DNA from: Bugula neritina
Taxonomy: Eukaryota; Animalia; Bryozoa
Direction: 5' to 3'
NCBI GenBank assembly: GCA_964035545.1
Contig: OZ037773.1
Location: forward strand, 339,751 to 403,750
Length of the DNA stretch: 64,000 nt
Under the pieces are notes generated by a model. That model made no database searches, was not told where the DNA came from, and was given only the letters and a program-made list of their open reading frames with translations. Shown piece by piece: positions 14,175 through 29,790 of the stretch; positions within the stretch are counted from its first letter, which is position 1, and every line of letters begins with the position of its first letter. The translations under genes were made by a program, and so were the position numbers.

Positions 14175-17100
14175 ATGCTCTGTTATTTTTCCCTTTTCTG
14201 TCTGGTATATTCCATGACTTGTGTTTCAGGTAGGTGGTGTGAAGATTAACAGCAGAATGGAATATAATTAGCTAAGTATTTTTGAGTTTACATTGTCTTA
14301 CAGTGAAATATATTTAATATGATACAACAACAAAACGTCATGGAATATTTAGCAGTAGTTAAAGAGAAATAATTACAAAATGTTTTCTTTGCTGCAAATG
14401 CTTTGGTTGTACATTGGTTTTGAAGAAAAACTGTAAACGTTGTTACAATTATTATAACTTGTAAGCATTATAACAAAACAACTTTAATAGCCTAGTTTTC
14501 AGTATTTATGTTGTAGTTCAAGGGTAACATTGAATTAAATTAAATATATGCCACAATCATGAGTCATGACCAGTATGCTGATAAGGAAATTTATTTTGTT
14601 AATGATATGAAAATGCAGGCTACTGCAATTGCCTATTTTTTTAGCTGAGAGATCTGTAACTATTAGCCACAGCTCTAACGGGACACCAGACTTCTACTAT
14701 AACGACAAAGTACGTTTTAACTGCAACTCTACTGGGTTTACTTTTCTTCAATATGTGTCTTTGCTGTACACCTTTGATGAAAAGTCGAAAGATTTTACCT
14801 GCAGAAGAAACATGACCGAGGAGTGGCGAACCTACATTGATTCAGTAGTATTATACAATACCTACTGCCAGTTTCACGCTGAAGATGAAGGCTTTGATAT
14901 TGATTTTATTGTCCCCATGTCTGTGCTGTCTTACGGAGGCTTTGTGTGCGTTGCCGGAGATATTGACGGCACGGAGGTTTCATCTGCAGATATATTTGTA
15001 CCAGAACTGAAAGGTAAATAAACAAATCTCAAATACCATTACATATCTCTTCACGGTATAATACTATCTTTATATATCAGTACACATATGATAATATTAG
15101 ATATATATCAGTACACATATGATAATATTATCTACATATATATCAGTACACATATGATAATATTATCTACATATATATCAGTACACGTAAGATAATACTA
15201 TCTATATAATACATCAGTACATGTAAGGTAACCTTGTACTTTTCTCTTATACACAACTACATACAAACATTCACATGCCTTAGTTTAACAGCTCAAACAA
15301 TAGTAATGAATTTCTCAGTGCTTGTCACGAAAGCATATTATGTTATTCCATTTAAATTTTTATTTTAAATCCAAAATATCTTGGTTAAACATTGTATTCA
15401 TTAAGAATCAGTTTTAATTTTGCTAAAAGGTATTTTTAGGAAATTTTAGGTTTTTAGTTAGTGTCATCATATGTTAGTGTCTGTAAGCATTTTACTTTTA
15501 GTTGAACTCGACAAATGTGTTTTGACATATTAAAACAGTAACTAGACTATTTTGAGTTAAGTTTTACATGAATTCACTCTAAATTATTACAATAATATAC
15601 TTATATTGCAATGCATTAGATCATACTATATAAATGCAGGTGTATATACATATGCATAATCAACGCAGGCTTTAGTGGTGCTGTAGAATCACCCTGCTTC
15701 ATTCAACTTTTCAATAACAATATAATAGATGATATATTATAGACATAAATACAAATTCTGTGAGCTAATTAATAAACATTGCTTTATTTATTTTCTCAAA
15801 GAACTAATAACTTCATTAAAGTAACTTACAAAAGAATTATCTAGCAAACTCTAAAACTACGTTCAACACTTCAAAGCCTTTAATTACTAGCTGAATGAAG
15901 CAAGTTGCTAAGAACATTAAACTAGTTTCCATTCAAACCCTGGAGCAATACTTGAAAACATAAGCAACCTATAAAATATGCTCAAGTAAAACTTGCATCA
16001 CACAAATTAAAGAGAGTGGTCAGTATCTACTGAAGAAAAGTTGCATGAAACTGTTTCTGTTCAATGTAAAACCTGCCACAGCAGTATATCACTGTAATCA
16101 ATGTGTATGTAGGCTTGCTGTTTGTTAGCGCCATTCATACGCATCCAAACTTACAGTTCAGTAAAAAGACAAAATCGGAAAACTTATCTTTCTAACTTCA
16201 CTATTAAAGCTTTTTTTACAAAATAGGATAATAAATATTATAATCTACAAAATGAACTTTATATGACTTAGTTATCTAATATATATATAAAAATGTGTCT
16301 TTCTAGATCTTGCAGATATTATTGATTTCTTTAGTAGCTCCTGCTAATTTAACTATGAGAGCACCAGAAACAGTAGCGGTGGATAAAGAATTTGAGTTTG
16401 GTTGCAGTTCTACTGGAGCTCACCCTGCTTCTGTGTATGAGTACAGTAAGTTGATTGAGTTTCTTCTATCACTATATTGCTGACAAGTGTGCACTGTAAC
16501 TTTTATAAATAATTTTTATTATAGTAACAGCCATGATGAACGCTACTTTCTTTTATAAAGAACTAGTGTGTAAAAAACTTAGTTTGGTTGTGGCGTCACA
16601 CTCAGAGTGAGGCTTATAATCAAATTAAAGAGGAGTTGTCTAAAGACAATGCTCTTGCTGCTAATGGCCACAATGCTGAAACCATTGTTCAAACTCATGC
16701 CTGTATAGGATAGTATCGGTGTAAATTGATACAAGTGCAGAGGGATGATTAAAAAAAGATTGTGACCACCGCTTCTCGGTCATCGACAGAAACTGAGAAG
16801 AGGTATGCTATACCAAACAAGTAGCTTTCGTTGTCGTTTAGGCTTGTATCAAATTAAAAGACTATATTACTGGCCTCACAGCTCGTATTCAAACGGATCA
16901 TAAACTTCTAGCTCCACTTTTAAATGACATAGGGTTAGACAAGTTGACAGTGCGCATTCAAAGATTCAGGATGCGACTTATGAGATTTACCTGTGACAGA
17001 ACACATTGCTAGTACAGACAACATTCTAGTGGAATTGAACTCTCACATTTGGAGGTCCCACCTACAGTTAAAAAAATTCACTTTGTAGATGAGTTAGAGT

Positions 17101-20100
17101 ACTCAGTGCAACAGGCACACAAAATGTATGCCTTTAGTGAGAGATTGGCTCAGTTTGTTGAATTTCAGAGAGCTGATGAAGTCCTTTGTCAGATAATTAA
17201 ATTTGTTGAAACTGCTTGGCCTGCCTATTTTACTAATCAGGATGTTCCTCTTGTTCGTACTTTGAGTCAAGGTCAACGATCTTTATTTATAATAGTTTGG
17301 TAATCCTAAGTGATTGCACCATCGTTCCACAGTGTGAGAGATTTGAAATACTTAAGGCTATACATCAAAGTCACCTTGGAGTGCCATAGTGTCACGCTAG
17401 AGCACAACAAATAGTTTGGTGGCCTGAGATCTTCAAGAAAATTAGTGAAATGGTTCGGCAATGCTACTCATGCAGAGTCAGCGCTAGTTTAAGTCCATGT
17501 TGAGATTAATCATTTGTCAGAATTTACCAGTATATTGGCAGTCATCGAGCATTTGAGCTGCTTTTTTGCTAGAGATATCATTCTAGATTTGTTAGTGTCA
17601 GGCAATGGGCCATGCAGAGTATTCCAGCATTGAGTTCAAACAATTTGTGTCATCATACATATTACCGACATTGCAAGTTCCCCAAAACATGCTCAAGCCA
17701 ATGGAGCCTCTAAGAGAGGCAAACTGTCAAGGCAATGCTTACGAAAAAATTTGACCGCACATCTTTGCCCTGCTTGCATATATGTAGGCCCTCTCCTTTA
17801 GAAGATGATTTGTGTCCTAAGAAGATTTTAATGGAAAAAGGCTAAAAACAACCTTTCTAGTGTTACTACTATTGCTAGAGCCCCAAATGGTAAACAGAGA
17901 TATTGTGCGGGAGAAAGAAGAGGCAAAGTGATTCCAGATTAAAGCATGATTTGATCGAAGACATAAAGTAGTAGTGTTACGTCCTAATCTTGATCGAGCC
18001 AGAATACAAGGTTGTTGTAAGAGACCTAAGTAGAGAAGCTGTAGTACCTCGTGAACGTTTTGCTGAATCACATGTTGTTCAGAATAGTAGTGGTTCAGAG
18101 GTTAAATGTACCTAATCAGGTGGATCTAGTACCACTGCACCAGAACAAGGAAGGAAATAATTTGTCAAATTCAGGTCTGTCTAATAACCCCCCCCCTATT
18201 TTACACGCTGTAGTCAATAAATCAAATCTCCGCAACTACTCAACCTCTAGCTTGCAGTCTCATAGTTTCTAATGTTGCACTTTAAATGCTAATAGATCCA
18301 TGGCATTATTGAGCATATGTTGCACTTAACTAAAGTTGAGGTCATATTCATTTAACCTGTTTCCCTTTACTATACTGTAGTTTAAGTGTTATTGTCTTAA
18401 CGCTATAATGATTTATATCAATGTTTATTTCTGTTCTTGTTTGCAAAAAAAGAGAATGTTGTAATTTGTTGGTTACCCTCCCACTTTGAAAACACTATGT
18501 TATAATGTTGGAGTTGTCTGCTCTGAATACTTGGTTGTACTACTTGGTGCTACACATGCGGATAAGGTATAGTTTACTTCCAAGCTTATTGCTTTGTAAT
18601 GAAACAGCTTTAATCAAATAATACAACAACTTCATGCGAGATCAACATTGAGAAATGTTGTAGGTGAAGAGTTGTTTTGTTAATAATAAATTGAGAACAT
18701 GTAAAGTAAGCAAGAATACTATTTTATTAGAAGCAAATGGGAGACTGCTTACCCTACCAAAATACACTCCAACAGCAGAAGATAAAGATGGGCTAAATAT
18801 AACTTGCAGAGATCTGAGTCATGCTCACTGGAAGGGAGGCAATGTAGAACAAACCATGACTTTGAATTTAAAATGTGACTAACCTTACACATGTTGAGTG
18901 TAATTATGTGTAGCTAGTTTGCTAGAGAATAGAAGAGAGAGAGAGAGAGAGAGAGAGAGAGAGAGAGAGAGAGAGAGAGAGAGAGAGAGAGAGAGAGAGA
19001 GAGAGAGAGAGAGAAGAGAGAGAGAGAGAGAGAGAGAGAGAGAGAGAGAGAGAGAGAGAGAGAGAGAGAGAGAGAGAGAGAGAGAGAGAGAGAGAGAGAG
19101 AGAGAGAGAGAGAGAGAGAGAGAGAGAGAGAGAGAGAGAGAGAGAGAGAGAGAGAGAGAGAGAGAGAGAGAGAGAGAGAGAGAGAGAAGAGAGAAGAAGA
19201 GGGGAAATGACAGAGCACATTGCAATGGTCAGAAATCATACTAATGTTTTATTTTAGTATATTACTAGAAAAAACACATTCTCTTTTGCCTTTTAGTACC
19301 CGATCTAAGGGCAGCTGTAGAGCTGAGACAAATATCCAAAGGAGCACCAGATATTTACTTGAAAGATTCAATCCTCTTCAAATGTGTTTCAAAAGATTTC
19401 ATTAACTTGCAAAAGTTGAGTTTAAAATTTAAAATTGATGACGACGAGTATGAAACATCCTGTCAGCGTAGCAGACAACAACAAAAAATATGGGTGAAAG
19501 GAACAGATTCTATTACACATGTGGATGGAATAGAAGGACCTGATACATCTGAAGATTACTGCTCAGCCAGTGGTAAAGCAGACGGGTTCACTCTCAGAGT
19601 CACACTCCGAGTAGATTACACTACAGTTAAAGGAATCTGGTATTGCGAAGGTCTAGAAGGGCTTTACAATATTTTATCTGAAAAAATAGAAATGAAAGAA
19701 ATCAAAGGTAACAGAATTATATATATATATATATATATATATATATATATATATATATATATATATATATATATATATATATATATATATATATATATAT
19801 ATATATATATATATATATAACACATAACAGAGTAGGCTACCAATATCCATACCAATCAGTTAGCAAGTTATGTTTAGTTAATGGCTGCAGCGCTCAACAC
19901 TTGTGTTAAATAATTTTTACCTGCAGTGATTCTTTTTAGTGGCTGCCTCTAAGTTAACCCTGAATGTGCCAGATGAGCTCATTGTTGGGAAAGAGTTTAG
20001 CTTTTCTTGTGTCTCTAAAGATGCCAAACCACCTTCTAGTTTTGAATACAGTAAGTTGATTATTAATATTTTATAACTAATCTTAATTTCTTATAAAATA

Positions 20101-29600: not shown

Positions 29601-29790
29601 GAGAGAGAGAGAGAGAGAGAGAGAGAGAGAGAGAGAGAGAGAGAGGGGAGGGGGAGAGGTTCCATTATCTTATTTAGTAACAAAAACATTATTTAACTTT
29701 TTAGGTGTAGTAGCAAATGGGAGAAACAATTGTGGTCACATGACTACGCTCCTCCTGCTAGCAATGTTTACGACACAGACTGTGCATTAG
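26602..29790 (+). CDS. Ig-superfamily cell-surface protein B: signal peptide-V-C2-putative GPI signal (~262 aa)
   Basis: Exons 26602-26662 (MFHCRFYFLYYLISFSCITW), 27842-28225 (V-like), 28605-28715 + 29112-29258 (split C2), 29705-29790 (SVVANGRNNCGHMTTLLLLAMFTTQTVH*). Phase-1 GT-AG introns; the joined 789 nt is open; paralog of gene A. Confidence 0.85.
27031..27718. repeat. 14-bp GC-rich minisatellite, ~49 near-perfect copies, in intron 1 of Ig gene B
   Basis: Unit GCGCCTGGTGCGCT; explains ORFs 26979-27767. Confidence 0.98.
29395..29645. repeat. (GA)n microsatellite
   Basis: Direct inspection. Confidence 0.98.

Follow-up and report, generated by a model that had tools for sequence, protein, structure and literature searches.

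The window analyzed here is a stretch of 64,000 nucleotides (nt) of Bugula neritina DNA (contig 9:339751-403750; gene positions are given in window coordinates), animal DNA that is rich in AT and contains spliced genes along with microsatellites and retrotransposons. A human origin of the contig was rejected, and the best named match of the neighbouring gene is a B. neritina protein. In-frame analysis of splice sites on the + strand yielded models of two adjacent genes, A and B, both of which are intact and combine V-like domains with C2-type domains of putatively immunoglobulin (Ig)-like fold. Gene A (14175-20826; approximately 471 residues) is predicted to encode a signal peptide, V, C2, V, C2 and a short hydrophobic C-terminus, and gene B (26602-29790; approximately 262 residues) a signal peptide, V, C2 and a short C-terminus. 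Each C2 domain is encoded by two exons, C2a and C2b. Every intron is GT-AG; all are of phase 1, as an earlier preliminary description of the locus had reported, and all internal exons are symmetric. The first module of gene A is referred to as M1 and the gene B module as M3. The features of the two genes are given below, with reference to a second B. neritina lineage that is represented by the NCBI assembly GCA_010799875.2, two Joint Genome Institute (JGI) metagenomes and three read assemblies. Searches were run exon by exon, and C2 statistics are per-exon counts added up.

14175..14229, + strand: gene A exon 1, which carries the start codon, encodes a hydrophobic signal peptide and ends in phase 1; 93-95% identity in the second lineage
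14645..15013, + strand: gene A V1, V-like exon of 123 codons, phase 1-1; orthologue with 94.3% amino-acid identity, dN/dS 0.12
16335..16445, + strand: gene A module 1 C2a, 37 codons; 86.5% DNA identity to 28605-28715
18731..18874, + strand: gene A module 1 C2b, 48 codons; 88.9% DNA identity to 29112-29258, with mosaic site patterns
18760..18846, + strand: 87-nt tract matching 29141-29227 exactly, read as the most recent conversion tract; the second lineage differs from both copies at six sites
18934..19194, unstranded: (GA)n microsatellite in the intron after module 1 C2b
19297..19707, + strand: gene A V2, V-like exon of 137 codons
19940..20050, + strand: gene A module 2 C2a'
20373..20510, + strand: gene A module 2 C2b'
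20750..20826, + strand: gene A last exon, with small residues, a short spacer, a hydrophobic end of 12-15 residues and a stop codon; putatively GPI-signal-like or a truncated membrane anchor (GPI, glycosylphosphatidylinositol)
26602..26662, + strand: gene B exon 1, which carries the start codon and encodes the signal peptide; ATG, frame and donor site are kept in the second lineage
27842..28225, + strand: gene B V3, V-like exon of 128 codons; the second lineage retains the acceptor at 27842
28605..28715, + strand: gene B C2a
29112..29258, + strand: gene B C2b
29367..29645, unstranded: (GA)n microsatellite in the intron after gene B C2b
29705..29790, + strand: gene B last exon, encoding a short tail whose end is weakly hydrophobic, followed by a stop codon; frame and stop are kept in the second lineage despite compensating indels

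A third Ig domain, a full transmembrane exon and a cytoplasmic tail, which are present in core members of the wider family and in homologues from Watersipora subatra, are absent from both genes. This absence suggests that the products are most likely tail-less surface proteins that are GPI-anchored or minimally anchored. Read by eye, the last exon of gene A fits a GPI-type C-terminal signal well; the hydrophobic stretch of gene B is short.

Comparison of the exons within the two genes confirmed that V1, V2 and V3 share only scattered residues, with pairwise identities of 25.6-27.9%. In contrast, M1 and M3 are 86.5% and 88.9% identical at the DNA level in C2a and C2b, respectively. The preliminary description had called these C2 domains nearly identical, which overstates the 79.5% identity of the proteins and applies only to the first of the two C2 domains of gene A; the second is only about 40% identical to the C2 of M1 or M3. 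The similarity continues into approximately 60-70 nt of flanking intron (74-84% identical), and a (GA)n repeat follows C2b in both genes, both as previously described. Among the family members examined, only module 1 and gene B carry this repeat. The 87-nt perfect match was also recovered; it is identical at approximately 20 synonymous sites, yet its flanks differ.

The M1/M3 pair is an extreme outlier among the 325 pairs formed by 26 family modules (drawn from the contig 9 clusters at 0.03-1.09 and 3.07-3.25 Mb), with a C2 identity that exceeds the V identity by 51.5 points; the next pair reaches 25. The number of synonymous substitutions per synonymous site (dS) between M1 and M3 is 0.22 for C2 and saturated for V, and the non-synonymous counterpart (dN) is 0.11 and 0.89, respectively. 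Where M1 and M3 residues are conserved, the codons are identical in 59 of 65 cases in C2 and in 14 of 30 in V, the latter proportion being the same as in the oldest pairs of the family. Saturation of the V synonymous sites, together with codon identity at the level of the oldest pairs, thus indicates that the V-like exons of A and B are ancient paralogues, and the C2 block shared by M1 and M3 appears young. Fast V divergence following a recent duplication was considered and ruled out, as both the synonymous sites and the codon choice of V are as diverged as in the oldest pairs.

The second lineage provided an outside reference for these events. The window and GCA_010799875.2 are both labelled Bugula neritina, but their DNA differs by 12-23% across 25 kb, with dS values of 0.17-0.27, and second-lineage introns are 77-85% identical to those of the window. 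Divergence of this size fits separate cryptic species, and the two sources are therefore better read as members of the B. neritina complex than as one species. A hyper-divergent haplotype as the source of the 18% intron divergence was rejected, because the adjoining ankyrin-caspase gene, which served as a control (dS 0.165, dN/dS 0.32), and the intergenic DNA (77-88% identity) are similarly diverged.

The C2 exons of M1 and M3 were then compared as four sequences, two from each lineage. C2b features five concerted sites, at which the paralogues agree within a lineage and differ between lineages, all within 27 nt of the central tract. Its last 20 nt instead hold six sites with an orthology pattern, which runs into the intron (19 sites with flanks included); perfect segregation of five and six sites has a probability of about 2/462 by chance. 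In C2a the pattern is that of a star, a single informative site pointing in each direction; its second-lineage copies are 94.6% identical to one another (86.5% in the window) and only 89-91% identical to their own orthologues. This mosaic, concerted-evolution signature indicates repeated short-tract gene conversion of the M1 and M3 C2 exons. Conversion of the stalk, which had been proposed in the preliminary description, is thus supported by codon identity (59/65 versus 14/30), by the low C2 dS and by the switch within C2b from concerted to orthologous sites across lineages. An exact-pattern scan for the C2b core in the JGI metagenome contigs gave no match, near-identical records probably lying outside the scan.

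Selection was assessed per exon between the window and its second-lineage orthologues; the module 2 C2 and tail exons of gene A were examined in the window genome only. V1 and V2 have clear one-to-one orthologues with 94.3% and 91.2% amino-acid identity and dN/dS values of 0.12 and 0.15, respectively, and C2b of M1 is 89.4% identical (dN/dS 0.22). The exons of gene B gave higher values: V3 is 71.7% identical (dN/dS 0.58), C2b is 79.2% identical (dN/dS 0.47), and C2a is 77.8% identical, with 10 non-synonymous and 2 synonymous changes. The contrast between V3 and V1 plus V2 is significant (Fisher p = 0.0007). The frames, splice sites and stop codon of gene B are intact in both lineages, and V3 has neither indels nor stop codons in 384 nt at 16% nucleotide divergence. 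These values point to purifying selection on the V domains of gene A and to a rate of evolution three to six times higher across gene B, which, being common to all its domain exons, fits relaxed constraint as well as positive selection. Diversifying selection on the V-like domains, as suggested in the preliminary description, is therefore not supported for gene A and not shown for gene B. That description had also named low allelic polymorphism and congruent V and C2 phylogenies with one-to-one orthologues in distant species as evidence against a role in allorecognition. Gene A agrees with this in part, since it has one-to-one orthologues with conserved V domains in the second lineage, and so leans against this role; the V domain of gene B does not share this conservation. 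Between second-lineage samples, gene A differs by 0.1-0.3%; in 144 nt close to gene B, two samples show 3 differences.

Both genes belong to a large family. Genome searches returned at least 54 matches to the C2b exon and at least 60 to the V2 exon, nearly all of them on contig 9, where they form clusters at 0.03-1.09, 3.07-3.25 and 4.13-4.20 Mb, with a few on contigs 1, 2 and 4. The V/C2a/C2b layout, with a C2a of 108 nt in frame, is common to all 26 modules compared; single- and double-module genes both occur, and the family includes broken copies. Core members show 72-97% mutual V identity, and their modules are followed by a third Ig-like exon and a complete transmembrane exon, whereas A and B are divergent outliers and the most divergent members of the family. 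Nine disjoint paralogue pairs of the core gave a ratio of non-synonymous to synonymous differences per site (pN/pS) of 0.59 for V and 0.35 for C2 (Fisher p = 0.005), and the exon-wide V value is significantly below 1 (p = 3e-5). The core V exons are approximately 80% identical and share one variable patch directly after the second conserved cysteine (alignment columns 49-78; for example, L046:5955-6356), in which the non-synonymous difference is doubled and pN/pS reaches 0.9-1.8. A few young pairs exceed 1. Family-wide homogenization of C2 was rejected: C2 dS is lower than V dS in only 56 of 210 core pairs, so homogenization is a feature of M1/M3 rather than of the family.

Further observations concern the organization of the clusters. 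At contig 9:3,157,936-3,161,747 on the minus strand (L044:3936-7747), at least eight V-like exons lie head to tail at a spacing of about 490 bp with no C2 between them; some are truncated or contain stop codons, and the array could be a poly-V gene, an alternative exon set or a decaying array. Two pairs of modules have identical search scores (contig 9:69,767 and 103,963, which are 34 kb apart, and 209,894 and 225,926, which are 16 kb apart), which suggests very recent segmental duplications in the cluster. The member at contig 9:~718.4 kb (L036) ends, like gene A, in a short hydrophobic tail with a stop codon approximately 300 nt after C2b, thus indicating that tail-less variants recur in the family.

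Outside this genome, a profile of 27 V exons searched against 1.84 billion proteins returned 38 matches, most of them short open reading frame (ORF) fragments from metagenome or read assemblies. A few of the weakest were unrelated ankyrin-repeat, carbohydrate-binding, RTX and subtilase proteins, and the only full-length family members were two of ten Watersipora subatra paralogues, named 'uncharacterized'. The family looks bryozoan-restricted, because beyond the B. neritina genome it was found only in W. subatra and in short unnamed fragments. The Watersipora proteins (XP_067939839, XP_067939872 and eight paralogues) are true homologues: the V-like profile matches them with E values of 4e-4 to 5e-5 in the same search, and C2a/C2b are 45-57% identical to their second domain. 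[quoted passage not shown]

The Ig identity of these domains rests on fold prediction, which is favourable though of moderate strength, and not on a sequence profile. Searches of V1-V3 against Pfam, including V-set, ig and I-set, found no family at E <= 1, and across every exon and the intronic sequence searched the sole Pfam match was a weak one to RT_RNaseH on an intronic transposon fragment. For domains 1 and 2 of a Watersipora homologue (P0036), PDB sequence searches with the protein and with its profile likewise found no Ig match of significance. A structure of V2 modelled with 26 family exons (predicted local distance difference test score, pLDDT, 79.7; predicted template modelling score, pTM, 0.77) is nearly all beta with one short helix, and is predicted to be a V-set-sized, two-sheet Greek-key beta-sandwich that superposes on solved V domains. 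Foldseek comparison of this model with the PDB returned nothing at E <= 0.001, and the weak list consisted mostly of V domains; the ESM Atlas provided leads only, with uncharacterised mollusc clusters at 0.95 and V-set clusters at 0.89-0.90. Structural alignments of the first two domains of P0036 matched CEACAM1, CEACAM1a and PECAM-1 D1-D2 over 169-182 residues. Domain 2 (pLDDT 66-76) has no Pfam match and aligns in tandem with D2 of CEACAM1, PECAM-1 and LILRB4, and the third domain matches Pfam Ig_3.

Alignment of the 27 V exons revealed an invariant late aromatic-Cys motif (C116), a nearly invariant early F-x-C (C29) and an additional invariant cysteine pair (C55 and C88). The early and late cysteines are taken, by motif, as those of strands B and F, and a conserved tryptophan (W65) lies off the usual strand-C position. 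The C2a and C2b exons carry a B-strand Cys and D-x-G-x-x-x-C-type F strand motifs.

The closest analogue in kind is the Hydractinia Alr family, a clustered surface-protein family of the allorecognition complex in which an N-terminal V-set-like domain is followed by further Ig-like domains (PMC9546547). Alr sequences mostly escape Pfam, whereas their predicted structures match V-set domains; the family includes pseudogenes and tail-less or possibly secreted variants, and its clustering was proposed by the authors to be a substrate for gene conversion (PMC9546547). The bryozoan family shares with Alr its large chromosomal clusters in a colonial invertebrate, a V-set-like N-terminal domain that evades Pfam, pseudogenes and tail-less variants. 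In Alr V-like domains, however, bulky hydrophobic residues replace the B-F cysteines, whereas the bryozoan V keeps the putative B/F cysteines and a second conserved pair. Alr uses one exon per domain, while the bryozoan C2 is always split in two. Polymorphism and homophilic binding have been demonstrated for Alr1 and Alr2. No homology to Alr was identified in the profile search of 1.84 billion proteins, although that library carries no names.

A similar organization is familiar from vertebrate families. CEACAM/PSG, KIR and LILR proteins carry a V-like or Ig N-domain on C2-type domains, have transmembrane and GPI-anchored members, and are encoded by tandem clusters that turn over rapidly, evolve as mosaics of domains and undergo gene conversion between loci. 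In the two-domain structural comparison, one of the best matches to the Watersipora homologue was CEACAM1 D1-D2, but no sequence homology of the bryozoan family to CEACAM/PSG, KIR or LILR was detectable. The homogenized part also differs: paired receptors of the CEACAM family are homogenized in their ligand-binding N domain, A and B in the membrane-proximal C2.

Taken together, A and B are probably adjacent intact genes of a multigene family of immunoglobulin superfamily (IgSF) surface proteins, in which old V exons are joined to C2 exons that have been homogenized by gene conversion. A mechanism is proposed where the C2 half-exons of M1 and gene B were homogenized by non-reciprocal exchange and would have been nearly identical when the lineages split, after which at least one further tract of 87 to approximately 96 nt would have been recopied in the lineage of the window. 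The 3' end of C2b would lie outside the exchanged tracts, placing the breakpoint between concerted and orthologous sequence inside this exon. Uniform phase-1, domain-bounded exons and close gene spacing could have eased the exchange. In the proteins, the membrane-distal V-like domain would bind a ligand on another cell or particle, with C2 acting as a spacer, and A and B, which have no signalling tail, would serve as adhesion or ligand partners, co-receptors or decoys for tailed relatives.

Alternatively, a single old duplication or shuffle of an exon block could have set one C2 block beside two unrelated V exons, with purifying selection alone acting since. Symmetric phase-1 exons would permit such shuffling, the architecture is common to both lineages, so the main event predates their split, and the C2 dS between paralogues is close to that between lineages. 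We nevertheless consider this history unlikely, because the five clustered concerted sites would need five parallel changes if no exchange followed the split, and the synonymous identity of the 87-nt tract stops at its flanks. The second-lineage C2a copies also resemble each other more than their orthologues, and the similarity of the intron flanks finds no explanation in selection at the protein level. Several points weigh against the conversion reading itself and its protein-level extension. The concerted-site argument rests on five sites, and neither the direction nor the number of conversion events can be fixed from four sequences. The splicing pattern is predicted from sequence, as are exon 1 of gene B and the last exon of each gene, although conservation in the second lineage backs the exons for which a comparison was possible, and the C2 fold is judged solely through the Watersipora homologue, whose domain 2 was modelled at modest pLDDT. 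The gene B product, given its short C-terminal hydrophobic stretch, may be secreted rather than anchored. What A and B do can be read in further ways. Dpr/DIP proteins of insects and IgLON proteins are small, often GPI-anchored proteins of two or three Ig domains, and this family resemblance raises the possibility that A and B are ordinary members of a developmental or neural cell-adhesion code that does not discriminate self from non-self. An architecture of two to four Ig-like domains on a lipid-type anchor and the strong conservation of the gene A binding domains between lineages would suit such a code, and one Watersipora paralogue has been named 'neural cell adhesion molecule 1-B-like' by NCBI. 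We regard this as rather unlikely: Pfam, protein-profile and PDB sequence searches found no relation to Dpr/DIP or IgLON, and bryozoan-only sources, quick turnover by tandem duplication and broken copies are more typical of environment-facing receptors.

Such receptors were the preferred interpretation of the preliminary description, in which distal V domains of allorecognition or immune receptors were driven apart by diversifying selection while their stalks were homogenized. Several observations would agree with it. Bugula neritina forms colonies, and larvae of one population have been reported to settle in a kin-biased manner (PMC10078279); the gene family is large, arranged in clusters and apparently restricted to its lineage. 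Core V exons have a higher pN/pS than C2, with one patch reaching 0.9-1.8 and a few young pairs exceeding 1; gene B shows a low V identity between lineages, and sequence near it differs more between second-lineage samples than gene A does. An allorecognition role for A and B is nonetheless improbable, as strong purifying selection acts on V1 and V2, each of which has a one-to-one orthologue, and the saturation of V synonymous sites between paralogues indicates an old difference rather than selection after duplication. Exon-wide V pN/pS in the family is below 1, gene B is fast in all its domain exons and not in V alone, and both genes are without a signalling tail. A quite different view is that both genes have lost their function and are decaying at the edge of the cluster, which could account for their position as the most divergent members without third Ig, transmembrane and cytoplasmic exons, for the raised dN/dS of gene B and for introns filled with satellites and transposon fragments. 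This is very improbable, since every reading frame, splice site, start codon and stop codon examined is intact across two lineages that are about 0.2 dS apart, V1 and V2 are strongly constrained, and V3 is free of indels and stops at considerable divergence.

The preferred reading, that of old V exons and converted C2 exons in a surface-protein family, has consequences beyond the two genes. The locus offers a concrete instance of a clustered family whose V-set-like surface proteins escape sequence profiles, and supports the view that profile searches underestimate how widespread and varied V-type domains are. It is also a clean natural case of exon-scale mosaic evolution, in which old, putatively ligand-binding domains sit beside a reconverted inner domain with a breakpoint within an exon, and which can be dated against a sister lineage. 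No recognition or immune receptor family in bryozoans was described in the literature searched, and the annotated homologues are only 'uncharacterized' Watersipora proteins. The basis of kin-biased settlement and colony interactions in bryozoans is a long-open question for which the family offers candidate genes, although candidates only. That the chromosome-9 family is a bryozoan self/non-self or kin-recognition system, which gene B, the transmembrane core genes and the hypervariable V patch would serve, seems doubtful to us; if true, the system would have evolved independently as a counterpart to the allorecognition complex of Hydractinia, around an unusual V-set-like domain of its own and with exon-scale gene conversion as its means of diversification.

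The remainder of the locus holds repeats and mobile elements. Rfam gave a single match in the window, an unrelated tRNA at 47309-47381. Further repeat and transposon features in or between the two genes are as follows:

16842..17300, + strand: retrotransposon fragment in the C2a-C2b intron of module 1; weak Pfam RT_RNaseH match, E 0.0064
22963-25492: 26-bp AT-rich satellite, 97 copies, filling the space between gene A and gene B
27031..27718, unstranded: 14-bp GC-rich minisatellite, 49 copies, in gene B intron 1; the second lineage has approximately 166 nt there

The insertion in module 1 predates the lineage split, as the whole intron aligns with that of the second lineage. Downstream of gene B, an 8.6-kb stretch (30566-39156) contains a Ty3/gypsy-type retrotransposon with gag-pol ORFs at 31.7-36 kb on the minus strand. 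The NCBI B. neritina assembly lacks this stretch at the corresponding site (L059:5238-5328, where L059 is GCA_010799875.2 contig VXIV02002151.1), thus indicating an insertion specific to the lineage of the window.

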